This document shows positions 104 through 42,386 of a stretch of 64,000 nucleotides of DNA, in pieces (positions within the stretch are counted from its first letter, which is position 1; each line of letters opens with the position of its first letter). Source of the DNA: Neoechinorhynchus agilis (taxonomy: Eukaryota > Animalia > Acanthocephala); contig CM121341.1 in assembly GCA_051530055.1 (NCBI GenBank), forward strand, positions 2,966,151 to 3,030,150, given 5' to 3'. The position numbers were made by a program, and so were the translations under genes. The notes beneath the pieces are model-generated. The model made no database searches. It was not told where the DNA came from and saw only the letters and a list, made by a program, of their open reading frames with translations.

Positions 104-2641
104 TCACAGATAGAACAACTTATCAGCCAACGACAAATCGGGTTCACGTCTTACATATTGGCCGACCAAATACGCAAGTTTGTGTGCATAAAGACAAGGT
201 GCCGGAATCGCGATAGTTCCAGGCCAATTGTAGTAAACGTGAGTGAGTTTGAACGTGAGTTTTTGTAGACGTTCAAGAGTCAGAGGATTGTACGTGTTCA
301 CGAGTACGACGTATCTAGTCGGTGACACGGATCCTTGTCTTGTAAGTTGAGAAACTAATAAAAACTCCTTTTCTGCAAAACGAGCAACGTCAGTGTCAAC
401 AATACATCCTGGACTAGGATTTTGAAGTTTTTGATGTTTATCCAGGCTAAAAATACGTGATTGTATTCGTTTATTGACTGCTATTGTTACAAGATCCGGC
501 TTGTAGGACTCACCAAATGCATATGTTGCGTTTTCGAACTGTTTAACTTCATGTTCAATTATCACTTGGAATTGTGAATCGCCTGCACTATCGCGATAGA
601 TCACAACTTTCGAAGGAAGGTTTCCGGTTGCTGCGTGGTAATGTCGAAGGCAATCTACAAAACAAATCCGAAGTCCGTCTGCAATTTCCTGTCGATTTGA
701 TGGATGCATCGATGCTCGACTGAACCACTGATTACACTTCGAATCCACAGAAGCTACAACGCCTACTACTGATGATCGAGATGATGATAAATCCAAGGAT
801 AGTGTAGATGAGGAACGAGATGCGCCGTGATGGTAAACGTCAACACCAATTACCATGAGTCCTTGAAGAGGAATGTTGATTGACCACAAGTGTCCGCCTA
901 ATTTACAAACCAGTTGCATTAATATTCTCTGAATGATGGTTCGTGCTTTGTTCGCATTAGAAAGACTTCTTGTCAAAATAACTTGATTCGCCATTGGATA
1001 AGCAACACAGCAAGTCGTTTTTATAGCTGCATATCGTTCTTCACGTTGATCAGGGACGATACAGATTGAAAGATCGATTCTATGATTGTTTCGAGCACAA
1101 TCATTGAGTGCCTCAATGTAAGTATGACTTCTGTCATCTTTTATAAGTGCAATGATTGGATCAGGTAGTCGGCTCATTCCGATTGTTATACATTCACGCA
1201 TTGCAGTCTCTTTAAAGAAATAACAAAGCCGTTCGAATTTACGTGGACAAACAATCATCCACTGAGAAGGAGATGCGGTCTTTGCTACTTTCATTCGACT
1301 AAGTTCACGATTCCATTCGGCTGTATGACCAACCCGGAAGCTTCCTCCATTTGCCAAATTTAGAGTTTCAGAAGCTAGCATATTTCCTCGCACTTTAAGG
1401 AATTCGGTGTCTAATTTAAGATGCCATTGTTCAAGACGCGACCTCGCTTCTCGACATGCCATCACATTATCCACATACTTGCACAACTTATCCATTCTTT
1501 GCGTTGGATCCAAATGTACCACGGAACTCAAGTCTTTCATCGCTTTAAAATCCGCTCTAAGAGAATCCGTGAGACCAGTCAAATAACAAAATTCAGGAAT
1601 CAGTTTAACGTATCTATCCGGTCCTTGTGTTGGTCCACGTTGTCTAATCCGGCTCAAAATCAACGGTTGGTCTAAATTAGCGATTTGAAGATCATAAGTT
1701 TTTTTATAATAATCCTCGTAAGTCACAAAATTCCCAGAGTGGTCTTTAAATCCCGAAGATGAAGTTTCATCGAATAAAACATCGTCAACTCGGTAAGTCT
1801 TGTTATTGTACCTCGTCAAAACTACACTTCCGATTAAATCTTTCTTGAATTGCTTCTTAAGATTATCATCATTAGTGCGAGAACAGGCCACCATTTCTTC
1901 GTACATTTGATAACAAGTAATGGTACGGACCACTCGATGACAAACGTCCAAGCACACAAGAAGATGAGTATCATCACGGCCGTGTTTATCCTTTGTTTTA
2001 AAATACGAACAGCTCGTAGCAATCCCCGGCCAAACTTCTAATCTTGACTGTCTCATCAGAATCGAAGCTTTCATGTCGAAATACGTACGTTTTTGAAGAA
2101 CATACCTTAAATCAGACATTATCTGACGAAAAAGGGTATTGAGCACAACGCATGGGACTTCGTTGACCATCTTTTTTACAAGACTGACTTTACAACTAAC
2201 ATGGTTTCCATTCGAATCTCTTAAACTTCCCTCGGTTCGTTGAAGTTCACAGTTGCAAATGTACAGAATCGATCGTCCATCGTAAGCGCTGATTGAAGCT
2301 TCACCGACGATTTGTTTGATTAAGGTCGTTTTTACAGACCGCCTCTCACATTCTGGTTTGAACACTACATTGTACTGGTAGATCAAAAGTGGCTCACAAT
2401 CGACCTGGACTTTAAGGTAGTTGACAACCACGCTCGTTAATCCGGACTCGTTTCTCGGAGAATCTCGGTGTGAGGAAGTAACGTTATTAGAACCTAACAA
2501 GTCCTCCAACGGTCGTCGTTTTCGCAGTTCTAAAGAACGTCCGTTTTCAATGACGGGTGGTGACGATCGATCGGTTTTTGCCATTTCAGCCGATTCTATT
2601 TGACGCATGGCCGCAAGTAGCTTCGCCGTCCGACCCCTCAT
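104..2641 (-). CDS. piwi: Piwi-clade Argonaute, 845 aa, intronless
   Basis: PAZ motif VLTRYNNKTYRVDDV; MID/PIWI motifs KLGGHLW, MVIGVDVYH, RQEIADG, IYRDSAGDSQ, QLTRQGSVSPTRY, YYNWPGTIAIPAPCLYAHKLA; C-terminal LFYL; D-E-D-H tetrad residues present. Confidence 0.97.
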   Translation of the reverse strand: MRGRTAKLLAAMRQIESAEMAKTDRSSPPVIENGRSLELRKRRPLEDLLGSNNVTSSHRDSPRNESGLTSVVVNYLKVQVDCEPLLIYQYNVVFKPECERRSVKTTLIKQIVGEASISAYDGRSILYICNCELQRTEGSLRDSNGNHVSCKVSLVKKMVNEVPCVVLNTLFRQIMSDLRYVLQKRTYFDMKASILMRQSRLEVWPGIATSCSYFKTKDKHGRDDTHLLVCLDVCHRVVRTITCYQMYEEMVACSRTNDDNLKKQFKKDLIGSVVLTRYNNKTYRVDDVLFDETSSSGFKDHSGNFVTYEDYYKKTYDLQIANLDQPLILSRIRQRGPTQGPDRYVKLIPEFCYLTGLTDSLRADFKAMKDLSSVVHLDPTQRMDKLCKYVDNVMACREARSRLEQWHLKLDTEFLKVRGNMLASETLNLANGGSFRVGHTAEWNRELSRMKVAKTASPSQWMIVCPRKFERLCYFFKETAMRECITIGMSRLPDPIIALIKDDRSHTYIEALNDCARNNHRIDLSICIVPDQREERYAAIKTTCCVAYPMANQVILTRSLSNANKARTIIQRILMQLVCKLGGHLWSINIPLQGLMVIGVDVYHHGASRSSSTLSLDLSSSRSSVVGVVASVDSKCNQWFSRASMHPSNRQEIADGLRICFVDCLRHYHAATGNLPSKVVIYRDSAGDSQFQVIIEHEVKQFENATYAFGESYKPDLVTIAVNKRIQSRIFSLDKHQKLQNPSPGCIVDTDVARFAEKEFLLVSQLTRQGSVSPTRYVVLVNTYNPLTLERLQKLTFKLTHVYYNWPGTIAIPAPCLYAHKLAYLVGQYVRREPDLSLADKLFYL

Positions 2642-2746
2642 TTTTATTATCTAAAATGAGGAGAGGTTAATCCATCTTTTCAGTATTCTCTTGAAAAGAA
2701 TAACGAATTTACTTTAAGGGAAGATTTTTCTAAGAGAATATAAACA

Positions 2747-5700
2747 GATTTTAACCCAGTGGAAAACACCACATTACGATTTCTAATCCTAGGAAAAAAT
2801 TAGCCCTTCTGCAAATATCGTCCATTATCAATTCGTAAATTTATAAAATTGTTCTGAAATTCGACTTTAAGAGAAAATTTTAACCCAGTGGAAAACACCA
2901 CATTAAGATTTCAAATCCTAGGATAAAATTAGCCCTTCTGCAAATATCGTCCATTATCAATTCGTGGAAAACACCACATTACGATTTCTAATCCTAGGAT
3001 AAAATTAGCCCTTCTGCAAATATCGACCATTATCAATTCGTAAATTTATAAAATTGTTTTGAAATTCGACTTTAAGAGAAAATTTTAACCCAGTGGAAAA
3101 CACCACATTACGATTTCTAATCCTAGGATAAAATTAGCCCTTCTGCAAATATCGTCCATTATCAATTCGCAAATTTATAAAATTGTTTTGAAATTCGACT
3201 TTAAGAGAAAATTTTAACCCAGTGGAAAACACCACATTAAGATTTCTAATCCTAGGATAAAATTAGCCCTTCTGCAAATATCGTCCATTATCAATTCGCA
3301 AATTTATAAAATTGTTCTGAAATTCGACTTTAAGAGAAAATTTTAACCCAGTGGAAAACACCACATTAAGATTTCTAATCCTAGGATAAAATTAGCCCTT
3401 CTGCAAATATCGTCCATTATCAATTCGCAAATTTATAAAATTGTTCTGAAATTCGACTTTAAGAGAAAATTTTAACCCAGTGGAAAACACCACATTAAGA
3501 TTTCTAATCCTAGGATAAAATTAGCCCTTCTGCAAATATCGACCATTATCAATTCGCAAATTTATAAAATTGTTTTGAAATTCGACTTTAAGAGAAAATT
3601 TTAACCCAGTGGAAAACACCACATTAAGATTTCTAATCCTAGGATAAAATTAGCCCTTCTGCAAATATCGACCATTATCAATTCGTAAATTTATAAAATT
3701 GTTTTGAAATTCGACTTTAAGAGAAAATTTTAACCCAGTGGAAAACACCACATTAAGATTTCTAATCCTAGGATAAAATTAGCCCTTCTGCAAATATCGT
3801 CCATTATCAATTCGCAAATTTATAAAATTGTTTTGAAATTCGACTTTAAGAGAAAATTTTAACCCAGTGGAAAACACCACATTAAGATTTCTAATCCTAG
3901 GATAAAATTAGCCCTTCTGCAAATATCGTCCATTATCAATTCGTAAATTTATAAAATTGTTTTGAAATTCGACTTTAAGAGAAAATTTTAACCCAGTGGA
4001 AAACACCACATTAAGATTTCTAATCCTAGGATAAAATTAGCCCTTCTGCAAATATCGACCATTATCAATTCGCAAATTTATAAAATTGTTTTGAAATTCG
4101 ACTTTAAGAGAAAATTTTAACCCAGTGGAAAACACCACATTAAGATTTCTAATCCTAGGATAAAATTAGCCCTTCTGCAAATATCGTCCATTATCAATTC
4201 GCAAATTTATAAAATTGTTTTGAAATTCGACTTTAAGAGAAAATTTTAACCCAGTGGAAAACACCACATTAAGATTTCTAATCCTAGGATAAAATTAGCC
4301 CTTCTGCAAATATCGACCATTATCAATTCGTAAATTTATAAAATTGTTTTGAAATTCGACTTTAAGAGAAAATTTTAACCCAGTGGAAAACACCACATTA
4401 AGATTTCTAATCCTAGGATAAAATTAGCCCTTCTGCAAATATCGTCCATTATCAATTCGCAAATTTATAAAATTGTTTTGAAATTCGACTTTAAGAGAAA
4501 ATTTTAACCCAGTGGAAAACACCACATTAAGATTTCTAATCCTAGGATAAAATTAGCCCTTCTGCAAATATCGTCCATTATCAATTCGCAAATTTATAAA
4601 ATTGTTCTGAAATTCGACTTTAAGAGAAAATTTTAACCCAGTGGAAAACACCACATTAAGATTTCTAATCCTAGGATAAAATTAGCCCTTCTGCAAATAT
4701 CGACCATTATCAATTCGCAAATTTATAAAATTGTTCTGAAATTCGACTTTAAGAGAAAATTTTAACCCAGTGGAAACACCACATTAAGATTTCTAATCCT
4801 AGATAAAATTACCCTTCTGCAAATATCGACCATTATCAATTCGCAAATTTATAAAATTGTTTTGAAATTCGACTTTAAGAGAAAATTTTAACCCAGTGGA
4901 AAACACCACATTAAGATTTCTAATCCTAGGATAAAATTAGCCCTTCTGCAAATATCGTCCATTATCAATTCGCAAATTTATAAAATTGTTTTGAAATTCG
5001 ACTTTAAGAGAAAATTTTAACCCAGTGGAAAACACCACATTAAGATTTCTAATCCTAGGATAAAATTAGCCCTTCTGCAAATATCGTCCATTATCAATTC
5101 GCAAATTTATAAAATTGTTCTGAAATTCGACTTAAGAGAAAATTTTAACCCAGTGGAAAACACCACATTAAGATTTCTAATCCTAGGATAAAATTAGCCC
5201 TTCTGCAAATATCGTCCATTATCAATTCGCAAATTTATAAAATTGTTCTGAAATTCGACTTTAAGAGAAAATTTTAACCCAGTGGAAAACACCACATTAA
5301 GATTTCTAATCCTAGGATAAAATTAGCCCTTCTGCAAATATCGACCATTATCAATTCGCAAATTTATAAAATTGTTTTGAAATTCGACTTTAAGAGAAAA
5401 TTTTAACCCAGTGGAAAACACCACATTAAGATTTCTAATCCTAGGATAAAATTAGCCCTTCTGCAAATATCGTCCATTATCAATTCGCAAATTTATAAAA
5501 TTGTTCTGAAATTCGACTTTAAGAGAAAATTTTAACCCAGTGGAAAACACCACATTAAGATTTCTAATCCTAGGATAAAATTAGCCCTTCTGCAAATATC
5601 GTCCATTATCAATTCGCAAATTTATAAAATTGTTCTGAAATTCGACTTTAAGAGAAAATTTTAACCCAGTGGAAAACACCACATTAAGATTTCTAATCCT

Positions 5701-6037
5701 AGGATAAAATTAGCCCTTCTGCAAATATCGACCATTATCAATTCGCAAATTTATAAAATTGTTTTGAAATTCGACTTTAAGAGAAAATTTTAACCCAGTG
5801 GAAAACACCACATTAAGATTTCTAATCCTAGGATAAAATTAGCCCTTCTGCAAATATCGTCCATTATCAATTCGTAAATTTATAAAATTGTTCTGAAATT
5901 CGACTTTAAGAGAAAATTTTAACCCAGTGGAAAACACCACATTACGATTTCTAATCCTAGGATAAAATTAGCCCTTCTGCAAATATCGTCCATTATCAAT
6001 TCGCAAATTTATAAAATTGTTTTGAAATTCGACTTTA
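2747..6037. repeat. 129-bp tandem satellite, ~25 copies, directly upstream of piwi
   Basis: Unit ...ttttaacccagtggaaaacaccacattaagatttctaatcctagg... recurs at 3092, 3221, 3350 (period 129); only a few SNP variants. Confidence 0.97.
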
Positions 6038-8989: not shown

Positions 8990-9975
8990 CATTAGAGTAA
9001 CGGCGGTCGGCAGTTTTTCGTTAAATCCTCCTCCGATACGATCCCCTATGTTTTATCATCGTAATCAGAAGTGAAGATGGCAATTTCCTCTTTTGCTAAC
9101 GGATCAGCTCACGGACTTGACGGGCTTCGGTCCGACGCTGTACAGAACCTCCAAGATGCATTGGCACGCCTAGTCGACCAATTTGCAGGGGGAGAGATGA
9201 TTCCGAAAGCAACTGAGTTACTTTTTGGCGCATCTTTGTGTGTCCTCGCAAAAAGGAAGGTGGGATTCGTCTCATTGCAATGGGACAACTCTGCGCCGCT
9301 ATTTCGTTAATGCTTCATGGGACTGCAACTCCCTTGTTGTTCAATAATCACGTTTTGTGGTAAGAAAGCGAAGTTCAACAAAGGGATCCTTTGGGCCATC
9401 TAGCCTACTCACTCGCAGTCAATCCAGTCGCGCACTCTCTCCAGTCCAGCTTTGACGGCGATTTGGAGACACTCGTGAAGGAAACGGCGAAAATTTTCCA
9501 TTGCATCGAATGCTGCGAAATGCGAGATTTTAGTGATGAGCGTGGGGTAACGAGGGAAAGTATCGTGAAAGATTTTCAGAATCCGTGCCCCGGGATAGAA
9601 TTGATCACTCTAGACCGGTTGAGTCTTCTAGGAGGCTGCTTTTTTGGTTGTGATGTTGAAGCAGGGATTGCCAATCTTCAACCGCAACTTTCGGTGCTGT
9701 GCGAACGAGTCAATGAATTATCTTCACACGAGGCTCTGTTCCTGATCAAGAACATCCTCTTTATTCCAAAACTGCTGTATAAGCTGCGCACTGCATCTTT
9801 TTTAGACATAAGGATAAGCTGGCAAAATTAGACGAGACGGCGAAAGCCTCTCTCCTGAAAATTTTAAATACTCAGCAGTCTGACGAGGCCTGGGGTCAAG
9901 CGTCATGCCTGTGTCGTCCGGCGGTTTGGGTATTCGAAAAGTAGCCGATATTTCTCTGCCAGGTTATTTGGGCGA
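8990..9975 (+). mobile_element. Degenerate CRE-like (REL-type) non-LTR retrotransposon, RT fragment
   Basis: ALARLVDQFAGGE, FGASLCVLAK, VQQRDPLG (QGDPLG motif), ALFLIKNILFIPKLLYKLRT; frameshifts and stops. Confidence 0.8.
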
Positions 9976-9980
9976 CACCG

Positions 9981-11450
9981 ATGCCGTCCCCTCGCTTCGC
10001 TCGGAGCCTGAATGCTAGACAACAATATGAAGACGGAAACTTGCCCGCCCAAAATGAGCCAAGTGAAAAGACCGAAGAAACGCCCAACGCTACCGGGACC
10101 CCACGCCTAAATTATATTCATCAAATCACTGACGCAGACACTTTGAACGCGCCACTTATCGATCGCGCTCAACCTAAGAAGACCAACGCTGCCGTGCTCC
10201 AACGCGTCTCTAATGCTGTGTGTTCGGTTTGCGGTAAGTCTTTCAAATTAACTAATTTTGGGGTTTTGTTTGCTCATGGTCCCCGGGACTTCCATTGTAG
10301 CGGGTCCGGTTCTCCATCACAATCAGCCGATCTGTTTATGCCTGGGACCCCTCAGATAACCACTGACTCTATTTCGCTACCTGATATCGTGCGGTTTCTG
10401 CCCAGGAACGTCCTGGTCGCTAAAGGATTTACAGGATTGCTCAACGACTGCCTTCAAAGTAACTGTGCGCCATCATGGACGCGGCTCTTCGTATTCCCGC
10501 GCTTAGTCCTTTGCATCAGTGATGGTTCTGGGGTGTCTTTGACATCAACAATCAAGGAAAGGGTGGCCTCCTTCTAACAGATATTTAACAATTTCGAAAT
10601 GAAATTTCCGGAGGTTCGTAAGGGACGCACGAAGGAAGGGTTTCGTTGCCGTTTTTCAAAGCGATCCCTGGCTGAACGTGTCTCTTCGAAGCTTGCGGAC
10701 GGAGATATTCGGGGGCTGTTCGGTTATTGTCATCCTCCGACAGTTTCGCAAAAGGAGACAGCGAGACGCTACAAATACTCCGGTCGAAGCACCCATGTAG
10801 TAGCGGAAGTTTTGAAATTCCATCTCCTCCCATACAAGACAGGACGCGAACTCAAATTTCAGAGTTACAAAAGGCCATCTCATCTTTTGCAAATGGTTAG
10901 GGTCATGGGCTTGACGGACTAAGGCCTCAGCACCTAAAGGACATGATGTCCTTTACAGCTGGTGAAGCAGCTCTCTCTCTAAGAAGTGCGCTTTCTCGGT
11001 TAGTCGACCGCCTGACTGGAGAGGACCTGAATCCCGTTGCAAAAGCCTTTTTTTCGGAGTATCTTTATGTGCCCTCGCAAAAAAAGTTGCGATTCATCCT
11101 ATCGCCGTATCTTCGACGATACGAGGACTTGCAGGAAAAATTCTCTGTAGACGTATCACAGAGAAAACCGGACAGCAACTTCGCCCAGTCCAACTGCGCG
11201 TCCTGCGGGGCGGAAGCTATTGTCCATGCGCTCCGAAACTTTAAAACGAAGAGTTCAGAGCCGTGCGTGATTCGTAAGTGTGATTTTCAGAATGCCTTTA
11301 ACTCTCTCAATCGAGAAAGCATATTCTGCGCTATTAGGGATCACGCACTAGAAGCCTTCCAGTATTTTCTCAATGCCTACGGGACCGCGACTCCTTTGCT
11401 TTTCGAAGATCACCTCATTTGGTCCGAAAGAGGAGTGAAGCAAAGAGATG
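9981..11450 (+). mobile_element. Second CRE-like element: N-terminal zinc finger to RT start, truncated at the EVE junction
   Basis: CSVCGKSF..GVLFAHGPRDFHCSGSG finger; CGAEAIVHALR, KCDFQNAFNSLNR, WSERGVKQRD; frameshifted. Confidence 0.82.
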
Positions 11451-11546
11451 ACACTAGAGTTGATTTCGCTCTTACCACTTGTAACCAGTTGTCATAATTA
11501 TTGTGCTCCTACACATTTTGAACAACTATCTTCTTCTCGTACAAAC

Positions 11547-12806
11547 ATGGTGAATGAGAAGCGCCAGTTAAGGCAAGACAAATACCGCGAAATGCGAAAT
11601 GCTCAATACCTTGAAAGTGACGAATATAAGAATTCGTTTGGTCCGCCTGAATATCACGGCCCATCAAGAGGAAGAGCAAGAAGTAACTTCAGAAAGAGAG
11701 TGCTTGGTAGAACAGGTCAAAACATTGAAGCAGCCAAAATCAGTAAAGCCAATACCCAGTCAGTTTCGACTAGACTTGAGTCTACAAACAGAGATATCTC
11801 AACCATAGAAAGATTCGGTGCCACACACGTTAATCTCGGGTATCTGTCCGGTGCGCCAACTTTCCTCCCCTATGTTGCGCCAAGCGGACTTGATGGCTCT
11901 GCCATCACTTTACCAGCCGCAAGAATCATTGAATCGCTAGCGATCGGACTTTATGTCCAGAAAGTATCTGAGAATGAGTATGGTTTGGTTGACGAATCGT
12001 TCAACACTCTGTGGAACACGTCGAATATTGCAACACCAAACGTTTTCTCAATGATCTCAGCTTTACGTCCGGTTAGAACCAATGACTACACAATCGTTAA
12101 GAAACAGAAACCAGTAAATATTGAATGGGTCTACAAGGATAATGCTACAACACTGAGACTCGAGAGATATTTAACTTTGGTTAACGATCCACTTATGATG
12201 GGATTAATTAGCGCATGTTACGAACGATCAACATTGGACCAATTACATACTGCGATACTGTTGAGAGTGCACGCTAAATTACCCAATTTATCTGATACAG
12301 TAGTCAATGTGGACATGGGAAATACCTTAGAGTTCCTTCAAATTCCACCAATTCGAACCAAAGACAAGCAGGCGATTATAGAAACTATGGCTATGTTTGG
12401 ATGCTCCCAACATGATGGATGGGGCATTGATCGAAATCTAGACTTGGAGGATGTTTCCATTGAAAGTCTGTTCAATCAGTTCAAATCAAGTTTCCACAGG
12501 ACTGACTTAAACCAATACCTGGATTTAACGGTGCCTATGACTCAAAGCAACATCGCAGTAGTTGCAGTCATGACGGTTTTGAATTTCACCGATAGCAACG
12601 CTAATCCAATCCATAACTATGGAATTTGGCGAACAGAAAGTCCAACAAGGTACGAGTTACCATACAGAATGGAACGAAACATCTTTGGTGTGCTAGTCAG
12701 CACTTTACTCCGGCTCTTCGATACCACTCTAGTAACTGAGTTAGACAAGTTACACTATCAAGCAAGAAGTACATGCATACAAGTTGATGGTCCAAACCAC
12801 GCTTAA
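11547..12806 (+). CDS. Intact intronless orphan ORF (~419 aa from MVNEK; ORF-track frame opens at 11448), candidate RNA-virus capsid-like endogenous viral element
   Basis: Uninterrupted ORF amid decayed sequence; Arg-rich N-terminal arm (GPSRGRARSNFRKRVLGR); abrupt junctions with a retroelement RT (left) and an SLC17 remnant (right); ~1.4-kb block. The viral assignment is inference. Confidence 0.5.
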   Translation: MVNEKRQLRQDKYREMRNAQYLESDEYKNSFGPPEYHGPSRGRARSNFRKRVLGRTGQNIEAAKISKANTQSVSTRLESTNRDISTIERFGATHVNLGYLSGAPTFLPYVAPSGLDGSAITLPAARIIESLAIGLYVQKVSENEYGLVDESFNTLWNTSNIATPNVFSMISALRPVRTNDYTIVKKQKPVNIEWVYKDNATTLRLERYLTLVNDPLMMGLISACYERSTLDQLHTAILLRVHAKLPNLSDTVVNVDMGNTLEFLQIPPIRTKDKQAIIETMAMFGCSQHDGWGIDRNLDLEDVSIESLFNQFKSSFHRTDLNQYLDLTVPMTQSNIAVVAVMTVLNFTDSNANPIHNYGIWRTESPTRYELPYRMERNIFGVLVSTLLRLFDTTLVTELDKLHYQARSTCIQVDGPNHA

Positions 12807-12849
12807 CGTTGAATCCAAACATGAACTAGAGATCGATCGAATTGAAGTT

Positions 12850-13842
12850 TTGTGGCATTTGCTGTACGGTTTAGCGCCCGCTTGGTTTCCACCTAAAGAA
12901 AGATTGACCCACGTGGGCCTTGTTGAAGCAAGTGGAGGATGGACACTCTTTTTTACCTTCTTGGTAATTCTTGATAAATAATTATGTATAAGAAAAGTAA
13001 TAATCTAGGATTCATTGGACTCGTTTGGCTTCCTTTATGGATGGTATATGGTTCGCGGTCACCGCAGAATTGTAGAAGGCTCAACAAAGATGAATTGAAT
13101 TATATTGAAAGCAGCGTGGTCAACACAATGCCAGCGTCCAATAGGAACCCCTGGAACGTTATCGCTCAATCCAAAAAGGTGTGGGGATTCTGTGTTACGG
13201 TGATGTTTTACGATTTTTGACTCTATGCCACATTCACGGTCATTCCACAATACCTAAAGGATGATTTCAAGTTCACTTATTCAAAAATTAGTCTATATTC
13301 GGCGCTGTCGCATGTTCTTTGTACATTTCGTTAGTATCCTAAATTGATATATCGCTGTTAAGATGATCAATGGTCGCATCTTTTTCAGAACAAACTGCAA
13401 GAAACTCTTTCAATCAGGAAGTTGGTTAAACAACGTTCATTCATTTTTGGTCTCGCCAGAACGGCGAACCGTGACCGCCGTACTGTTTCTTTTTCTGTGG
13501 GTACTTCGTTTAAATATTTGCCGTGTGTGGCATTCACAGGAGGCTACTTTGTGGCAGCGTCCGATATTGGAGGTATTTTTCCGGTTTAATATACGGCATG
13601 GGAAATACAATGTCGGTCATCGTGGGTTTCATTTCCCCAACACTTCCTTCGGCAATAGTTGGTTCGGAAATACGGAATGTAGCCTCAAAATGGAAGACAG
13701 TGCTAATGGTCTATTCTAAATCGCTGTTCTTATCTTCCGCAATCTACGGTATTTTTGGATCCGGAGAACAGTGCAGTTGGGCAAAAGATCCTGAAAATCG
13801 TCAAGAGAATGATGCCATAGAACATAGAGAACAGGATCTTTG
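12850..13842 (+). pseudogene. 5'-truncated SLC17-family (MFS anion:cation symporter) gene, probably disrupted
   Basis: AWFPPKER, GFIGLVWLPLW, ELNYIESS, PWNVIAQSKKVW, SGLIYGMGNTMSVIVGFISP, YGIFGSGEQCSW; TGA at 13218-13220 in frame with downstream homologous sequence. Confidence 0.8.
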
Positions 13843-14224
13843 AATGTCAAGCGGCTTAAATGGAATAAAAAGTTTAACTTTTGGTTGGATCGAGATTGAG
13901 CTAAGGACTAAATTTAACAAACAAAACGTTTTGTTATAATTTCAAGAAATGATCATAAGGTAACAAAATTGTATGTTTATGCTATTAAAGATGGTCATTG
14001 CACCGGAGGCAAGGTATCAAAAGTGCAAATGAAATGAGGAGAAATGCATCCTTGACACGAATATCACTTACCGAGTCCAATCAACGTCCAAGCCGATTTC
14101 CTCGATGTCTCTTGGAACCAGTTCGAGCCAGTGTCAATTGATCGGCTTAAGCAAGCCTACGCCGACTAAACAGTGTCAGTCCTTTCGAAATAACTATCGA
14201 ATTCATAGATAAATCCGTGAACTG

Positions 14225-14660
14225 TCAATGAGAAATAGCCTGGCTCCCGTCTTGGCAATGCTTTGGAAAAGCAGTGTATCTTCCCACATTTAACGCCGAG
14301 CCAAATTTATCTCGGCTATGTGGATGATGCGCTGTTAACCTACAGAGAATATTGTAAAGATGAATTCTATGGATCCTACTGGTGGGATTAAGGTGAAACA
14401 AGACAAATTATCACATAATCTGCCGTTCCTCAATTCGAGCTTCAAAGTTAATGATCTGACTGATTTCAGTTGGTATCGCAAACCGTCCTTGTAAAATGAT
14501 AGTCATGCACCAAAATTCCCATTATCCTTGATGCTGAGATGCAAAGAACAACACTGGTTTTCTCATCTTTAACGTAGAAACAATTGGCGGTGGAGAGAGA
14601 GTGAAAGCAATTTTCGCTGAGATCTTGCGGATAAAGCGGCAGTGTGATTCAAGAGCGAGG
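14225..14660 (+). mobile_element. Degenerate Penelope-like element RT fragment, same family as 61099-62988
   Basis: NSLAPVLA, YVDD, LPFLN, FSWYRKP match the intact copy (GNSLAPVLA, YVDD, YLPFLN, WYRKP). Confidence 0.8.
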
Positions 14661-14754
14661 AGAAACGGAACAATGATCGTTCACGGAATCTATATGGAGG
14701 AACACGAATTCTCAGGATCCCATATAAAAGTAAAAAGTTCACTAGTGGCACTCG

Positions 14755-14850
14755 GAAACTGCTGCGACATGGCCATACAACGAGGGAATACGGCCAGCGT
14801 CAGAGGCACGGCTCCCTCGTGTGGAGTCGAAAAATGCAAAAAGTGTTAAA
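14755..14850 (+). mobile_element. CRE-like element 3' tip
   Basis: MAIQRGNTASVRGT matches the C-terminal ISLAVQRGNAAS motif of the other copies. Confidence 0.6.
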
Positions 14851-14964
14851 CAAAACTTAAAAATAAAAAAGCATAGATTTAATTATGGGAAATGGATGTT
14901 AAATTTCTTGGATTTAACATTTTGGGCACATTTGAGGTAACTTTAACCTTGAACGTGAATTAAC

Positions 14965-16045
14965 TCCTCGGAAGCAGGTTGGCCTCGAGTCAACTGACGC
15001 TTCTGACACTGTTTCGGCGGTGACAGTTACAACGAGTGTGGGACAGCAGGTCCAAGGTGCTACGTCCAGAGTAGGCCCACCCCCCGAGGCGCCAATTCCG
15101 GGGGCACACGAGGAAGCTGGGAGTTCGGAGAGGCAGCCCGGGCAATCCTAAAGAAGACTTTTGTTTCGATACCGAGAGATGTTAAAATGAAGACAGCTGG
15201 TGATTTCTGGTCTGAGGGGGCACTGCGTGGCGTCACCGGTGCGAGCAAAGCTGTCAAGGAGTTCGATCTTAACGTGAGAGAGCTGAGCGGGACGGACAGG
15301 CCTGGTAAGAAGGTGCTGGTTGAATTCCTAGGCGACGATGCGCTGCACCGTGCCTTGCAAGAAGAACCAACCGATCGCTGTTATTATTTTGTCAAACCGG
15401 AGCGGGTCTCAAATTGAGAACACTCCTGGCCTCTTATGACGAGGAGGCGTTCATATCTGGGTATGCCAATCAAGCAGTTGAGAACTACATGAAAGCCGAG
15501 CCGGGAGTGATGGTACGCCAGACCCCCGCGGACGTCGTTGAGTGGATGGGGGTCTCGGCCGGAGGACTGGGATTAAAGGAGAGTTCGTGCAGCATTTGCA
15601 GAAGCAGACAGTGGGGGCTTCTCTACGCGTGTGGCAACAGAAGGAAGGGCGAAGATGGTGTGTGGAGTTCTGTCTATATAAAGAGAATGAGCCGTTTGAG
15701 CGTTTAGACGATCCAGCGCGGAAGCGGTCTTGGGAGAAAGCTGGGCCAGACGTGGTACCCCTAGAAATGTTTCGTTGGGGAATGCCAAAGAAGTCAGAAA
15801 TGCTGACGGAGGAAGCGGTCTGCGGCAAGATGGGAATTCCGTTTTTCCAAGCGCGAAAGCTGGGAGGACCAGCAAATCTCGGCGGGAAGGTAGACCCAGA
15901 ACAGTGGAGCAGATAAAGAGACACGAGTGCAGCCTTCTACCCGCTATCTGCGGCATGTTTCAGGGGTTTCAAGTTCCCGCAAATAAGGGACCAGTTTCAA
16001 TTGGTCTGTATAATAAAGACGAACGCTGCAAAGTTTGTTGATACC
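14965..16045 (+). pseudogene. Frameshifted GC/purine-rich coding block, candidate endogenous viral element (orthomyxovirus PA-like by eye)
   Basis: Overlapping ORFs 15187-15417, 15414-15707 and 15542-15916 chain into one broken frame; motifs IKGEF, QKEGRR, EFCLYK, PDVV, IKTN. Confidence 0.4.
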
Positions 16046-17100
16046 ATGGGGGATATTGCAAAATACTGCTGTTGCATTAGAAAGCCTTCAAGGGAATTCA
16101 GTTACGTTTGAATGTCTCGCCTTGATCAGTATCTTAGCGATGAGCAACGATTATTTTCCGGTCTTCGAGGTGCGGGATTTATAAATCGCCAGCAGTTGAA
16201 TCAACTTGGATCGGCGAATGCTGAAGTTTGGCTATCAACATTTGATCCAAGTTTTAATGTGTAACTTAAGGTTGATTTAGGATTAAAATTTGGAGCAACT
16301 AGGCGCTGCGATAGTGACCGAAATTACAGTTGAGATTCATTACAACAAGAAAAAGTCTGCTATTATAAGCCAAAGTCCAAATGGTCCACGATTGCAATGT
16401 CAAAAGGACTTCTCGTTCATAAAGTATCGTAATTCTGAAAAATTATAAAATTAAAAATATCAAGCGTTAATATCCGCTCAGTTAAGGAGAATCATCAAAA
16501 CGTCAATGAAAATCCAATTGAACTTTTATGAATTTACTTACATCTTTAGCTTGAGAAATCGATTCGCCCGAGCTCGTTTGAAATCATTCAAAAGAAGAGC
16601 ACGAAGACGCATCTCCAAAATTCCGAAACAACGTGCGCCGTCGATTCGACGCTGAAAGCGAAAAACCATGAAAAAACGAAAGAAACGCGCTCATAATTTT
16701 TTTAACGTCGATCGTCATTTTTTGGTGCAAACTTGACAGATTTTGACTCTTCAACTTCGTTGCATAAATCACAAAAAGTTTACGCCTCGATGTAGTCCAA
16801 TTAATCTTCGGGAGCGCTCCTTGCAACTTTGATGGACGCCAGAGTACATTGTCAGGTTGCTGGTACTTTTGTAGGTTCAGAGTTGTCTGAGCCATCGTTG
16901 CAGCATTAAGAAAGTTCCCTTGGCATCCTCATGATGCCTGTAATAACGGAGGGATTGCCGCCAGCGGTTTTCCCTCGGCATTCAGTATCCTCTACTCTAA
17001 TGAACCCACTACTTAAATGCGATGTTTCAGCTGAGCTCTAATCGCGGTTTGGGTCGCTTATGGTCCTCTACCTTTTTATACGATTTCTGCTTTTACTTCA

Positions 17101-17690
17101 CGCTGCCGTTACGGAGTGACCGTGGAACCATCGGAACGCCATGGTCTCGTCTGTCGGCAATCAGGCGAAAGGTGCTCACAATAAGCCGAAGTGAACGCTA
17201 TTCTTAGCCGTGCCCTGAATACTGTGAATGCGGTCTGAGCAATTTTTGCCGACTCGATGGCCACCGTAGCCCGGACGGTGTTACAGTATTCCCGTGGCGA
17301 GGGGAAGCAAATGCCTTCTCTGGGACACGATTCGCAACCAGCAGCATAAAATTCGCCACCATTAAACCGGAGGAGGAGCAGCAACCGCCGCTGAGGACCG
17401 CAAAAAGATTAATACATTGACCTGAGTCGGAACCATTAATTCGTTCCCTTTGGCGTCGAGACGCTCGGGTCGTTCTGTACTACGACGCAGGATCTGGCCA
17501 AGCAATCGTCTAAGAGATTGAGAAGAATCACTGGTGATCAGAGATCAGGAACATTCCTCCTGCAAAATATTAGCCTGGCTGTGCAACAAGGGAACGTTGC
17601 ATCCGTCCTTTCGACCTTTACACCAGGACGGCAACTGAGTGATCGAGAGCGGTGGTGTGAATGATCTAACGTGTTATATAAGTAAAAAAA
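17101..17690 (+). mobile_element. CRE-like element 3' end with zinc knuckle and REL endonuclease
   Basis: CPYGVTVEPSERHGLVCRQS-type knuckle, RPDGVTVFPW, QNISLAVQQGNVAS; 17101-17604 is a near-identical inverted copy of 25936-26440. Confidence 0.82.
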
Positions 17691-18639
17691 TGGCGTCCGC
17701 AGTCAGCAACAAAAAAAATCGCCAAAATCGCCTGTTGGGTTCAAAATCATCGATTTATCTTGATGCGTTTACGCTCTATAGAAATCTTTTATGTAGCCAA
17801 GATTAAATAAGAATCCGATTGGACACAAGACGACGAAAATTATTACAATAAAACACAATGCCATTCATCTTAAATTTATGTGTTAATATATTCTTCGAAT
17901 TAGTAGCTTTCAAAATTGTCTATTAATTTGCCAAATGATGATAAATATACAATGAGCATACTGCTATTTGAATAAAGCAAAACTCAAATACTTTACCTGA
18001 TCTAAAAGCAAGCGCATCAGCGGAATTCAGAGCTACGGTTAAATATTTAGATCCTTTATGAGTATTTAAAATTTTAGGTTTACTTTAAAATTTTACTGAG
18101 TCGCAGAAAATTTTCCATTAACTTCTGCGTATACCAATACGCTTAGGTTTTAATTTTTGATGAGCGAATAAAAAATTGGGACTAAATGACTCCTTACTGT
18201 TTTGCTGGTTTCATGATTCGCTCTACAAGACAAATATTGATCCCGCTATAAAGTTACTTAAAACAACAGATTAAATAATAGATAAAGGCTTATGTTGAAA
18301 GATTAATGAATGAAAGTGATTCTTAAAGACGTCGTACAACCACGGATTATCTCAGATAATTTGAGGAATCCATGTAGTGAAATCGAAGAAGACAATGTAA
18401 GTGTTAAAGACCTCGGACAACCACGGATTATCTCAGATAACTGCAAAATTTGTACATCCTTTTGTTGTTTAAAGAACACATTGAGTTTAGGATCAAATAA
18501 CATTCATAGTAAATAAATTGGAATGAGTCGTCGGTGCATGATAATCGAAGGTTTTTGTGCGAACATCGACCACCCTTCCACATTCAGAAACGAGAAACGG
18601 AAAGACGATTAATGACTATTAAACTTCCCGTCATACATT

Positions 18640-19578
18640 TTAGGCGGGTGGTAGCTGGTACCATTGTACGGGGAACGTTTTGTTTGCAGGATACATTTCT
18701 CGACCTCGTGGTAATAACAGTCGATAAAGCTGCAGTATAGTGCTATCGGCTACTCCAGTGACATCACTGACGTCTTTTACAGTACGTCTAAGACCACAAG
18801 CACAAGCGGCCATATAAATACAAGCGCCTGCAATGGTGGGCGGAGCCCTTCCGGAAACAAGATCGAGCTCAACAGCCTTTTGAGAGAAATGTGCAGCCAA
18901 CGATTGGGCTTCTACGTTCATATGAAGCCGGGAACAAAACCTAGCCATATAATCCTCAGTCTTAACAACTCCAACACTTTCCTCGAGTGAATGTAAAATT
19001 TGTTTAAAGCAGCGACCTATATCGCGTTTACTGGCACTACTAACCCCACAAATTTCCTTTAAAGTCCGAGCAGCACTTGCCTGTCTACATGCAATGTATA
19101 AGCATGCAGCAACAATTGCGTCTTGTGGCCGACCTCGTAACGTTTTTTCATCTTTGATTCGCTTTAGAAGACCTTCAGCATTTTCAACAATAATCTGTGG
19201 AAGATTAAGCAATTCAGCGAGATTTTTCACTTCTCGGTAGCGAACCAATAAAGTCCTCATACTCGAATCTAAGTGTCTATGTCTGCGGTATTTCTGACGC
19301 CCATATCGATCAACAGCTCCTGAGTGACCGGAATATCCAATAGATGTAGTCATGTTGTAATCAAGGTCATAAAGATCATTACGGGCATCTCCCACCCTCG
19401 ACATGTCTCGAGCGTCCGCATCGCTTGAAAACGTTCGCCATTCAGCAGACACGTCTATAACTCTTTCGCCAGCAACGGTGCCACATAAAGGACATATTAG
19501 ATCACCGGCGTGATAGTCCTCAATCAATTCAGCATCAGGATGATCGTTGCAAAAATAAGCCTTGTCGCATTTAGTCAT
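18640..19578 (-). CDS. TFIIB: General transcription factor TFIIB, 312 aa, intronless
   Basis: Zn ribbon CNDHPDAELIEDYHAGDLICPLCG; B-reader ERVIDVSAEWRTFS; cyclin folds LRGRPQDAIVAACLYIACRQ and GRAPPTIAGACIYMA; first ATG at 19578. Confidence 0.96.
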   Translation of the reverse strand: MTKCDKAYFCNDHPDAELIEDYHAGDLICPLCGTVAGERVIDVSAEWRTFSSDADARDMSRVGDARNDLYDLDYNMTTSIGYSGHSGAVDRYGRQKYRRHRHLDSSMRTLLVRYREVKNLAELLNLPQIIVENAEGLLKRIKDEKTLRGRPQDAIVAACLYIACRQASAARTLKEICGVSSASKRDIGRCFKQILHSLEESVGVVKTEDYMARFCSRLHMNVEAQSLAAHFSQKAVELDLVSGRAPPTIAGACIYMAACACGLRRTVKDVSDVTGVADSTILQLYRLLLPRGREMYPANKTFPVQWYQLPPA

Positions 19579-19689
19579 CTGGAGAAATCCGAAAATCTCA
19601 ACAAAAAACAAACATTTGTCGCTTTCACACTTTTGTGTAACTAAAAATTCTTATATTTGTGCCCGAAATTTAACAAAACAACCAAGTTA

Positions 19690-38761: not shown

Positions 38762-39316
38762 TTATTGAGGAAGTAACTTGCAATCTCCTTTCTCAGTACA
38801 GCCTTCGCTAATCTTCTCTCTATTTGGTTTCCTCATCTGAGTCTTTTGCAACCACTCACGACGATTCTTTTCCCTTGCAGCCATTTCATCTTCCTTCTTC
38901 TTAGCATATTTCTCACAAACGTGCAAAGCATTCAATTTATGTTCGACATGTCGGATAACAGCATTATCAACATCCTCAATTTGTCGCTCAGTTTGACAAA
39001 TCCGCGGTTTCTCAGCGCTGACTTGATTCCTCATCCTTTCAAAAGACGCTTCTCTCAATTGGCGATGAGCATCATCACTTGAACAAACTTGAATTGCCTC
39101 TGATGACGAGTCATTGAAATCTTGCTCACAAAAATGCTCAAATGGGTTATTAGCGTACAGGGTTTTACACGTGCACGTCCGGCAAGCGGCTCCGGCTTTA
39201 GTAATGCCGTCAAAACACATTGAACAAACCGAATGACCGCATCGAGGCAAACGGCGTAGCTCTTGGCCAATGAGTGAACATTGAGCGCATCGCGGAGATC
39301 TACCGGAAGGTGGCAT
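38762..39316 (-). CDS. C3HC4 RING-finger protein with coiled-coil tail, 184 aa
   Basis: C-x2-C-x12-C-x-H-x2-C-x2-C-x10-C-x2-C: CAQC SLIGQELRRLPR CGH SV CSMC FDGITKAGAA CRTC. Confidence 0.85.
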   Translation of the reverse strand: MPPSGRSPRCAQCSLIGQELRRLPRCGHSVCSMCFDGITKAGAACRTCTCKTLYANNPFEHFCEQDFNDSSSEAIQVCSSDDAHRQLREASFERMRNQVSAEKPRICQTERQIEDVDNAVIRHVEHKLNALHVCEKYAKKKEDEMAAREKNRREWLQKTQMRKPNREKISEGCTEKGDCKLLPQ

Positions 39317-42300
39317 CTTCGAATCAGTGAGAATTGGAGAAGAATAAAGGATACTTTTGGGAAATAAAATAAATTCAACAAGAATTTAAGATGAAAATTA
39401 AACGCATTGTGGAGATCTACCGGAAGGTGGCATCTTCGAATCAGTGAGAATTGGAGAAGAATAAAGGATACTTTTGGGAAATAAAATAAATTCAACGAGA
39501 ATTTAAGATGAAAATTAAACGCATTGCGGAGATCTACCGGAAGGTGGCATCTTCGAATCAGTGAGAATTGGAGAAGAATAAAGGATACTTTTGGGAAATA
39601 AAATAAATTCAACGAGAATTTAAGATGAAAATTAAACGCATTGTGGAGATCTACCGGAAGGTGGCATCTTCGAATCAGTGAGAATTGGAGAAGAATAAAG
39701 GATACTTTTGGGAAATAAAATAAATTCAACAAGAATTTAAGATGAAAATTAAACGCATTGTGGAGATCTACCGGAAGGTGGCATCTTCGAATCAGTGAGA
39801 ATTGGAGAAGAATAAAGGATACTGGGAAATAAAATAAATTCAACGAGAATTTAAGATGAAAATTAAACGCATCGCGGAGATCTACCGGAAGGTGGCATCT
39901 TCGAATCAATGAGAATTGGAGAAGAATAAAGGATACTTTTGGGAAATAAAATAAATTCAACGAGAATTTAAGATGAAAATTCAGGGCATTGTGGAGATCT
40001 ACCGGAAGGTGGCATCTTCGAATCAGTGAGAATTGGAGAAGAATAAAGGATACTTTTGGGAAATAAAATAAATTCAACAAGAATTTAAGATGAAAATTAA
40101 ACGCATTGTGGAGATCTACCGGAAGGTGGCATCTTCGAATCAGTGAGAATGGGAGAAGAATAAAGGATACTTTTGGGAAATAAAATAAATTCAACGAGAA
40201 TTTAAGATGAAAATTAAACGCATCGCGGAGATCTACCGGAAGGTGGCATCTTCGAATCAATGAGAATTGGAGAAGAATAAAGGATACTTTTGGGAAATAA
40301 AATAAATTCAACGAGAATTTAAGATGAAAATTCAGGGCATTGTGGAGATCTACCGGAAGGTGGCATCTTCGAATCAGTGAGAATTGGAGAAGAATAAAGG
40401 ATACTTTTGGGAAATAAAATAAATTCAACGAGAATTTAAGATGAAAATTAAACGCATCGTGGAGATCTACCGGAAGGTGGCATCTTCGAATCAGTGAATG
40501 GGAGAAGAATAAAGGATACTTTTGGGAAATAAAATAAATTCAACGAGAATTTAAGATGAAAATTAAACGCATTGTGGAGATCTACCGGAAGGTGGCATCT
40601 TCGAATCAGTGAGAATTGGAGAATAAAGGATACTTTTGGGAAATAAATAAATTCAACGAGAATTTAAGATGAAAATTAAGCGCATCGCGGAGATCTACCG
40701 GAAGGTGGCATCTTCGAATCAATGAGAATTGGAGAAGAATAAAGGATACTTTTGGGAAATAAAATAAATTCAACGAGAATTTAAGATGAAAATTAAGCGC
40801 ATCGCGGAGATCTACCGGAAGGTGGCATCTTCGAATCAGTGAGAATTGGAGAAGAATAAAGGATACTTTTGGGAAATAAAATAAATTCAACAAGAATTTA
40901 AGATGAAAATTAAACGCATTGTGGAGATCTACCGGAAGGTGGCATCTTCGAATCAGTGAGAATTGGAGAAGAATAAAGGATACTTTTGGGAAATAAAATA
41001 AATTCAACGAGAATTTAAGATGAAAATTAAACGCATCGCGGAGATCTACCGGAAGGTGGCATCTTCGAATCAATGAGAATTGGAGAAGAATAAAGGATAC
41101 TTTTGGGAAATAAAATAAATTCAACGAGAATTTAAGATGAAAATTAAGCGCATTGTGGAGATCTACCGGAAGGTGGCATCTTCGAATCAGTGAGAATTGG
41201 AGAAGAATAAAGGATACTTTTGGGAAATAAAATAAATTCAACGAGAATTTAAGATGAAAATTAAACGCATCGCGGAGATCTACCGGAAGGTGGCATCTTC
41301 GAATCAGTGAGAATTGGAGAAGAATAAAGGATACTTTTGGGAAATAAAATAAATTCAACGAGAATTTAAGATGAAAATTAAACGCATCGCGGAGATCTAC
41401 CGGAAGGTGGCATCTTCGAATCAGTGAGAATTGGAGAAGAATAAAGGATACTTTTGGGAAATAAAATAAATTCAACGAGAATTTAAGATGAAAATTAAAC
41501 GCATCGCGGAGATCTACCGGAAGGTGGCATCTTCGAATCAGTGAGAATTGGAGAAGAATAAAGGATACTTTTGGGAAATAAAATAAATTCAACGAGAATT
41601 TAAGATGAAAATTAAACGCATCGCGGAGATCTACCGGAAGGTGGCATCTTCGAATCAGTGAGAATTGGAGAAGAATAAAGGATACTTTTGGGAAATAAAA
41701 TAAATTCAACGAGAATTTAAGATGAAAATTAAACGCATCGCGGAGATCTACCGGAAGGTGGCATCTTCGAATCAGTGAGAATTGGAGAAGAATAAAGGAT
41801 ACTTTTGGGAAATAAAATAAATTCAACGAGAATTTAAGATGAAAATTAAACGCATCGCGGAGATCTACCGGAAGGTGGCATCTTCGAATCAGTGAGAATT
41901 GGAGAAGAATAAAGGATACTTTTGGGAAATAAATAAATTACGAGAATTTAAGATGAAAATTAAACGCATCGCGGAGATCTACCGGAAGGTGGCATCTTCG
42001 AATCAGTGAGAATTGGAGAATAAAGGATACTTTTGGGAAATAAAATAAATTCAACGAGAATTTAAGATGAAAATTAAGCGCATCGCGGAGATCTACCGGA
42101 AGGTGGCATCTTCGAATCAGTGAGAATTGGAGAAGAATAAAGGATACTTTTGGGAAATAAAATAAATTCAACGAGAATTTAAGATGAAAATTAAGCGCAT
42201 CGCGGAGATCTACCGGAAGGTGGCATCTTCGAATCAATGAGAATTGGAGAAGAATAAAGGATACTTTTGGGAAATAAAATAAATTCAACGAGAATTTAAG

Positions 42301-42386
42301 ATGAAAATTAAGCACTCGGAGATCTACCGGAAGGTGGCATCTTCGAATCAATGAGAATTGGAGAAGAATAAAGGATACTTTTGGGA
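39284..42386. repeat. 117-bp tandem satellite, ~26 copies, containing the RING gene start codon
   Basis: gatctaccggaagg at 39297, 39414, 39531; minus strand of each unit reads ATG CCA CCT TCC GGT AGA TCT CC(G/A) C(G/A)A TGC G(T/C)T TAA. Confidence 0.97.

Follow-up and report, generated by a model that had tools for sequence, protein, structure and literature searches.

RNA-virus inserts in mosquito genomes are arranged as clusters of virus-derived and retroelement pieces (PMC5497376; bioRxiv 10.1101/127498). Partitivirus coat-like genes in cellular genomes, such as the plant ILR2, correspond to the coat gene (about 1.4-2 kb) of a bipartite double-stranded RNA virus that was transferred alone, and are sometimes intact, expressed and flanked by retroelements (PMC12027680). 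Within the Acanthocephala, the genome of Pomphorhynchus laevis holds many inserts of RNA-dependent RNA polymerase (RdRp) genes (PMC12548735). The present analysis concerns a stretch of 64,000 nucleotides (nt) of the acanthocephalan Neoechinorhynchus agilis (assembly GCA_051530055.1, CM121341.1, positions 2,966,151 to 3,030,150, forward strand; the whole stretch is hereafter called the window), in which a leader and an intact open reading frame (ORF) of 419 amino acids (aa) form a discrete unit that abuts a truncated retrotransposon of the type without long terminal repeats (non-LTR). This unit belongs to a family of copies found only in Acanthocephala, to which we give an even chance of being endogenous copies of the coat or nucleocapsid RNA of an as yet unnamed RNA virus.

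The unit and its 3' end were delimited as follows (L001 and L007 are other copies in the same genome, listed below):

11450..11546, + strand, conserved 5' leader of 97 nt (alignments with L007 and L001)
11547..12806 (stop included), + strand, intact ORF of 419 aa with a basic N-terminal arm, predicted mainly helical (annotation, shuffles)
12807..12849, + strand, 3' tail of the unit and the bases that follow (3' flanks of four copies compared in pairs)

The first-pass annotation of this DNA had described an uninterrupted ORF of about 419 aa, an Arg-rich N-terminal arm and a leader of about 95 nt, and each of these was confirmed. The frame is open across 452 codons (11448..12806, +) and its ATG at 11547 gives 419 aa, while an in-frame upstream ATG at 11448 would give 452 aa and span the junction between reverse transcriptase (RT) and leader. 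Open frames of at least 419 codons were obtained in 0 of 2000 shuffles of the stretch (longest 204), and the chance of 452 open codons is P ~5e-13. The ORF is a called gene in the public annotation, its product being identical to a gene model on CM121341.1 (19.4-Mb scaffold, at about 2.97-3.03 Mb). The basic arm holds 9 R + K in residues 41-75, and 17 are found in the first 80 residues.

From 11465 on, the leaders of the window and L007 share 77% identity, and that of L001 aligns too (9903-10000 in L007, 9908-10000 in L001); the 5' end is thus common to the three copies. In a consensus fold of these three sequences only, a hairpin UGUGCU..UACACA (4 pairs) is invariant and is nested in a variable outer stem with compensatory changes at 3 of 10 pairs, and this structure may be a cis-acting RNA element. 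Beyond these three copies, neither the window nor loci L001-L009 yielded another occurrence of the leader, and positions 9000-15000 of the window gave no match to known RNA families in Rfam. At the other end, the similarity of the 3' tail to another copy ends at about 12818, and no poly(A) follows the unit between 12807 and 12849.

Leader and ORF together were recognised as a discrete unit of about 1.37 kb at seven loci of N. agilis (including the window), at three loci of P. laevis and in one contig of a read archive:

L001, N. agilis: intact, 442 aa, 61% identical
L002, N. agilis: 69-75% identical, with an internal gap
L007, N. agilis: on the chromosome of the window at a distance of some 240 kb, covered by two separate gene calls
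L008, N. agilis: C-terminal fragment
L009, N. agilis: internal fragment
L012, N. agilis: N-terminal fragment
L003, P. laevis: residues 1 to about 290, then an R2-like element
L004, P. laevis: intact, 442 aa, only 23% identical
L011, P. laevis: two pieces
L005, read-archive run SRR34340284: contig of 1415 nt, a 35% identical relative of the window ORF

In the read-archive contig, which probably comes from a third acanthocephalan, the called ORF ends at 245 aa, and similarity to the window ORF extends, across one in-frame stop, as far as its residue 349, where the contig ends. Among the N. agilis copies, similarity sets in at the leader and is lost within some 12 nt of the stop codon, while the flanks are unrelated; these copies are therefore considered as separate integrations and not as segmental duplicates. 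The unit behaves as would the reverse-transcribed copy of a discrete RNA of about 1.4 kb, in agreement with the first proposal. Protein divergence between copies is 25-40%, and no near-identical copies of the unit were found. The proportion of synonymous differences (pS) between copies is 0.70-0.88 (saturated) and nonsynonymous divergence (dN) is 0.15-0.31, with a ratio of nonsynonymous to synonymous divergence (dN/dS) of about 0.1 or less; the leader of the window and L007 keeps its identity where synonymous sites are only about 30% identical. Protein and leader were therefore constrained while the source lineages diverged. The first-pass annotation had taken the ORF for a single captured gene, a view that had to be abandoned, as it is one member of a multi-copy family restricted to Acanthocephala. 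Because about a dozen scattered copies exist, and only in this phylum, a mobile, RNA-derived family is preferred over a one-off capture.

Fusions of the unit, or of parts of it, with retroelement sequences involve different partners and different breakpoints; in the window, the partner is a non-LTR RT upstream. In L008, a gag-like ORF of an LTR element runs into capsid-like residues 303 (approximately) to 419 of the unit. In L009, one open frame starts as a homologue of a 920-aa ORF (see below) and passes in frame into CCHC knuckles, followed then by protease and integrase pieces of an LTR element, then by capsid-like residues 69-204. In L011 (7969-9350, +), residues 139-268 of a second capsid-like subfamily are followed, after a gap of 21 nt, by residues 2 to about 334 of the first, the two subfamilies being about 23% identical and placed head to tail; this suggests that both subfamily RNAs were present together at complementary DNA (cDNA) synthesis. 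Flanks, breakpoints and saturated synonymous divergence thus describe independent, diverged insertions that are often retroelement chimeras, as is the case for endogenous viral elements. The unit is also integrated in a host chromosome, as it lies between the Piwi and TFIIB genes and is flanked by host and repeat DNA.

A nearly complete nodavirus-type replicase was found in L008 at 14658-18409 (+), that is at about 9.68 Mb of CM121341.1 (Noda_Vmethyltr, E value 2.6e-48; RdRP_3 with the GDD motif), 4 kb from the unit copy and on the same strand, its frame being interrupted once. We found no published account of a noda-like insert from Acanthocephala, and the leader of the unit was not found upstream of this replicase. 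The replicase is followed by an ORF of 215 aa (L008, 18532-19179) and directly preceded by an ORF of about 920 aa (L008, 11512-14228, +) with a 58%-identical homologue in L009 (9923-11617, +). The latter ORF has no Pfam or NCBIfam match, and may be another virus-derived gene.

In the reading that we favour, a discrete RNA of about 1.37 kb (97-nt leader, 419-aa ORF and almost no 3' tail) would have served as a template for retroelement enzymes, which would have reverse-transcribed it and integrated a full-length copy into a retroelement-rich stretch of the chromosome. Its most likely source would be the coat or nucleocapsid RNA of an RNA virus lineage infecting these worms, which would make the unit a non-retroviral endogenous viral element, whose protein may package nucleic acid via the basic N-terminal arm. 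The three co-oriented pieces seen in the window (5' part of a retroelement, unit, 3' part of an SLC17 sequence) would have been joined during cDNA synthesis. Counted in favour of a viral source are the discreteness of the unit, its old independent lineages, the mosaics, and the presence of a bona fide RNA-virus insert in the same genome and cluster, to which are added that the ORF is not the ORF1 of the element in N. agilis, that it has no homologue beyond Acanthocephala, and that it combines a basic N-terminal arm with a helical prediction.

Compared with the described systems, the unit resembles the non-retroviral RNA-virus inserts of Aedes (PMC5497376; bioRxiv 10.1101/127498) by its repeat-rich clusters, by copies that share the orientation of the retroelement fragments they adjoin, with breakpoints that vary, and by the presence of several diverged copies per genome. 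In Aedes, however, sequence reveals the viral source and most partners are LTR elements, whereas the acanthocephalan unit has no virus match, has a non-LTR RT of the restriction-like-endonuclease type among its partners, and keeps complete open frames in some copies. The size of the unit, its basic N-terminal arm and its helical prediction are compatible with partitivirus coat-like genes such as ILR2, but genes of that type are 26-58% identical to living partitiviruses, and the unit to none. The RdRp-like inserts of P. laevis (PMC12548735) come from the same phylum and are likewise multiple, diverged (mean identity of about 60%) and fragmented; they are polymerase fragments of Mononegavirales, whereas the unit carries a structural-protein-like ORF without an assignable virus order.

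Identity was searched for at the sequence, profile and fold levels. Neither the unit ORF nor the family profile matched anything in Pfam, PHROGs, NCBIfam or the PDB sequences. A word-indexed search (5.8 billion clusters) and an exhaustive HMMER search (1.84 billion representatives) returned only acanthocephalan proteins and the L005 contig, a profile search of the 5.8-billion-cluster database brought zero new members, and no virus, rotifer or other animal homologue of the ORF was found among about 15 billion proteins. The similarity to an exogenous virus that is expected of an endogenous viral element was found neither with the single sequence nor with the profile. A Pfam scan of the window ORF gave no family at an E value of 1 or less, and a scan of 12 members gave stray matches of single members to DUF1168 (0.038) and BT_3987-like_N (0.075), neither being an ORF1 domain. 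The statement that the virus family cannot be named from sequence is upheld. The annotation had also named best matches to cellular proteins as evidence against a viral origin: the best matches are formally of this kind, yet they are acanthocephalan gene models, that is scattered and often broken copies of the same unit.

The AlphaFold2 model of the ORF (12-sequence alignment) is mainly helical, with a mean predicted local distance difference test score (pLDDT) of 47.5 and its C-terminal third unmodelled, and a second run on the most divergent member reached a pLDDT of 35.4, too low for the model to be of use. Foldseek searches with the first model gave nothing significant. Among these non-significant matches, places 1, 3 and 14 in BFVD are taken by partitivirus-type coats (E values 0.056, 0.089 and 0.76), and one such coat (8phh) ranks 10 in the PDB list with a TM score of 0.20, several mononegavirus nucleoproteins standing lower in the same list. 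Partitivirus-type proteins are the only coat proteins among the weak fold matches, all at TM scores of 0.30 or less, and no sequence or profile similarity to partitivirus coat proteins was detected; on such models, the resemblance may serve as a lead only. Because the ORF protein is predicted to be helical, a jelly-roll coat of the nodavirus type is unlikely. No nodavirus coat domain was matched in the ORF among the Pfam coat families, and the link to nodaviruses is limited to size (about 1.4 kb and 410 aa) and to the noda-like replicase insert in L008. The capsid identity proposed in the first-pass annotation is consequently not sustained by the searches, as there is no viral sequence match, the models are poor and the fold matches non-significant.

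Several results weigh against a viral source and are gathered here. No viral sequence or profile was matched although databases now hold very many viruses from metatranscriptomes, and the fold evidence is weak. A partner replicase segment with the same leader was found neither in the window nor in L001-L009. A viral segment normally retains a longer 3' untranslated end than the short tail seen here. Three intact copies (419 aa in the window, 442 aa in L001 and in L004) across two worm classes would suit a host gene family too, and in the P. laevis loci L003 and L004 the ORF lies directly upstream of a same-strand RT, as an ORF1 would.

The setting of the unit in the window was described using sister copies of the retroelement and protein searches:

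9065..9975, + strand, copy A of a CRE-like non-LTR element, from RT to the post-RT motif 'GGLGIR', broken and with its 3' side cut off
9976..11449, + strand, copy B of the CRE-like element, truncated at both ends, with its frame broken at least twice (at least one stop and at least one frameshift)
12850..13843, + strand, SLC17 (sialin/VGLUT-like) copy, intronless, 5'-truncated and broken, with search support from about 13005
17101..17616, + strand, 3' part of the element with CCHC and restriction-like endonuclease region, its first 28 codons sharing 96% aa identity with a sister copy

Copy A was recognised by tblastn with pieces of better-preserved copies and by a DNA match to L001 until about 9972, and its breakpoint was located by comparison with the sister copy inside the window. 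Copy B extends from 10 nt before the start of ORF2 ('MPSPRFAR...') through the Zn-finger region up to the RT motif 'GVKQRD'; twelve N. agilis homologues of its N-terminal part (59-77% identity) define this ORF2 start. The element is called CRE-like, its restriction-like-endonuclease class (R2/CRE/NeSL-type) being tentatively assigned from motifs by eye: the N-terminal zinc finger and the C-terminal CCHC and restriction-like endonuclease were read in this way in the ORFs of L007 and L010 (a locus with an element copy) and mapped in the window, and the endonuclease part matched no Pfam model. The RT domain RVT_1 was matched in the relatives L010 (1.9e-07) and L007 (2e-13), while the RT fragment of the window is too short to be scored. 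Six fragments of the element make up roughly a tenth of the window.

The junctions between the pieces are flush, at 9975/9976 between copies A and B and at 11449/11450 between copy B and the unit. The element copy of L010 is 87-88% identical to copy B until 11449 (the alignment includes 11332-11449 of the window), after which L010 reads on '...GVQQGDPLGLSP' ('...QGDPLGLSP') and the window departs from base 11450. The element reading upstream of the unit ends with '...WSERGVKQRD' and is cut right after the QxD motif, exactly where the first-pass annotation had placed the end of the RT (its QGD motif). The SLC17 piece starts within about 15-45 nt after the unit, and all four pieces lie on the + strand. 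The RT-leader junction was not found in other copies and is private to the window locus. A repeat scan of 11380-12920 found no target-site duplication or terminal repeats, and a repeat of 6-7 nt present at both unit junctions arises in 7-26% of shuffles, which is compatible with chance. A resumption of the RT directly after the SLC17 piece (YVDD at about 14320) was considered and rejected, as no element match exists there. At 14080-14400 (+), 'VSIDRLKQAY' followed by 'YLGYVDDALL', read by eye, resembles an LTR-element integrase end and an RT motif C that would belong to another retroelement; this fragment gave no match to the CRE-like element.

Capture of the unit by template switching, as first proposed, agrees with flush and co-oriented joins. 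RTs of this class are known to jump serially between templates, as described for R2-type enzymes (bioRxiv 10.1101/2021.04.30.442027), which would give joins such as those between copy B, unit and SLC17 piece. End-to-end jumping lands on acceptor 3' ends, however, and two of the landings are internal here (in RT motif B and in the post-RT region). The junction alone could equally be explained by a retrocopy, comprising the unit, the SLC17 piece and more, that integrated into an existing genomic copy of the element with loss of target sequence, since a same-strand 3' part of the element is present at 17101-17616. We rate this only slightly below an even chance, and it is compatible with any identity of the unit. 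The reading of copy A resumes at 17101-17616 with about 115 codons missing, this segment being a possible continuation of either copy A or copy B; the element is abundant enough in the window for a chance landing in one of its copies not to be unlikely, and the privacy of the RT-leader junction points the same way. The four co-oriented, flush pieces, the lack of a target-site duplication, the presence of only one element 3' part for two 5' parts and the jumping activity just cited argue for template switching instead. That part of the initial claim is therefore retained as one of two accounts that fit.

The SLC17 sequence announced after the ORF was found from about 13005 to about 13840, and its first 150 nt or so (12835-13000) are unsupported when searched alone. 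Residues 233-335 of sialin align with about 13005-13313 (E value 8e-10), the VGLUT/sialin C-terminus aligns with about 13517-13840 in another frame, and sialin residues 233-335 and 421-488 are collinear with about 13005-13790. The copy carries at least three in-frame stops and at least one frame change, and has no gene call in the annotation. An AATAAA lies about 25 nt past its stop, with neither a poly(A) tract nor a flanking repeat (3' side read by eye). Because it is intronless, 5'-truncated and broken, this copy is probably a processed pseudogene.

The contrast noted at first between an intact ORF and decayed neighbours holds, both element copies being broken and truncated and the SLC17 copy bearing stops and a frame change. 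At least 4 lesions in 833 nt of the SLC17 copy correspond to about 6 expected in the 1257 nt of the ORF, and the probability of finding none would be about 0.002 if the unit were neutral and inserted together with the SLC17 copy, a figure that depends on this co-insertion. It would follow that the unit arrived later, was under selection, or was kept open by gene conversion. The element copies are no guide to the age of the ORF, because some of their defects are common to other copies and may predate the locus. We infer that the youth of the copy, or selection acting on it, accounts for the intact ORF.

Beyond the viral reading, the identity of the unit was weighed against a retroelement-borne origin, in which restriction-like-endonuclease-type non-LTR elements would either carry the ORF as their ORF1 (Gag-like) or copy it in trans as an ORF1-only non-autonomous element. 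ORF1-only 'half' elements and the ORF1 of two-ORF CRE-clade elements would resemble the unit in a basic nucleic-acid-binding ORF, a conserved 5' leader, multiple copies and an association with non-LTR RTs, and an ORF1-only non-autonomous element would be comparable to the half-L1 elements of mammals. Such an origin is doubtful, though it is the identity other than a viral one that best withstands the data. It would account for the order seen in L003 (capsid-like part, C2H2 fingers, RT, endonuclease-like part) and in L004 (intact 442-aa ORF, some 0.5 kb before the RT). The conserved leader might act as an internal promoter, the copy number and divergence of the unit resemble those of the N-terminal region of the element (59-77% identity), and a basic nucleic-acid-binding protein suits the role of an ORF1.

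The P. laevis loci nevertheless do not discriminate, because cDNA begun on an element RNA and continued on another RNA gives the same order. Their elements are of different families with different joining points, the capsid-like part of L003 is cut at about residue 290, and no recognisable ORF2 N-terminal region is present in the 645 nt between ORF and RT in L004. In N. agilis, ORF2 or any shared sequence follows the unit at 0 of 4 3' ends, and the 5'-complete element copies (L010, L007) have no such ORF upstream; a fixed ORF1-ORF2 order or spacing, as well as any known type of ORF1 domain, is thus lacking, unlike in ORF1-type elements. The ORF has no zinc knuckle, RRM, coiled-coil or esterase signatures. 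The unit further differs from ORF1-type elements in having neither poly(A) nor a conserved 3' end of the type recognised by RTs, and no near-identical copies of the kind left by a recent transposition burst. An ORF1-then-ORF2 arrangement suspected by eye in L001 was rejected, as the downstream ORF matches nothing in the examined loci.

A lineage-specific host gene, orphan or long domesticated, that has left several paralogues and numerous non-functional retrocopies is an unlikely identity for the family; the window copy would then be a working paralogue amid repeats. The intact copies in the window, L001 and L004, the dN/dS of about 0.1 or less and the improbable intactness of the ORF under neutrality, if co-inserted with the SLC17 copy, would all fit such a gene, as would the fact that it was called by an mRNA-seq-guided pipeline on a repeat-masked genome (PMC12690905). 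An intron-bearing parent was not found, however, nor any homologue outside Acanthocephala; most copies of the unit are fragments fused to retroelement parts, their unrelated flanks exclude segmental duplication, and retrocopies of a host gene would here be without poly(A). A leader far more conserved than synonymous sites would moreover be unusual for a host 5' untranslated region.

Returning to the viral reading, the intact copies (the window, perhaps L001 and P. laevis) could be an exapted viral structural gene kept under selection, which we hold to be improbable; if true, they would be the only surviving trace of a virus group without a sampled living member. An assembly chimera or a chance open frame can be dismissed as extremely improbable: the 2025 N. 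agilis genome is a hybrid Illumina/Nanopore assembly with Hi-C scaffolding from about 50 pooled worms (PMC12690905), but the open frame is far beyond chance, the window has no gaps (no N runs anywhere) and belongs to a 19.4-Mb scaffold with the unit between host Piwi and TFIIB genes, and similar mosaics occur at other loci and in the assembly of a second species.

If the family is viral, it would be the first structural-gene record of an acanthocephalan virus, from a lineage beyond the sequence reach of current catalogues; we know of no described virus of Acanthocephala. The locus moreover offers a clean natural case of retroelement, unit and host mRNA joined flush in three parts beside an RT of the restriction-like-endonuclease type, which is rarely documented as a partner of RNA-derived inserts. 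Should the family instead consist of an ORF1-only retroelement or of orphan genes, it would belong to the ordinary repeat biology of a poorly studied phylum.

The host genes on either side of the cluster are the following:

104-5942, - strand, Piwi gene with PAZ and Piwi domains, one exon ORF of 845 aa
about 18640-19611, - strand, TFIIB gene, host neighbour

The Piwi gene precedes the repeat and insert cluster by about 5.5 kb, a closeness that is probably a coincidence. Elsewhere in the window, an intact ORF of 867 aa (49725-52328, +) matched nothing in Pfam or NCBIfam and nothing meaningful in the PDB, and the examined loci contain no relative. Overlapping repeated ORFs of 406-457 aa at 39055-42405 (-), about 85-95% identical and with weak DUF6538 matches, form an array that sits in strong GC and AT skew. 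An open ORF of 629 aa (61099-62988, -) matches RVT_1 below threshold (E value 2.2e-06, 28.0 bits for a cutoff of 29.6), and may be another retroelement, better preserved than the CRE-like copies. Finally, translated comparison of 15966-16913 of the window with 12394-13128 and 19414-19653 of L007 revealed a repeat that is about 93-96% identical between these loci 240 kb apart, which suggests a young repeat family.

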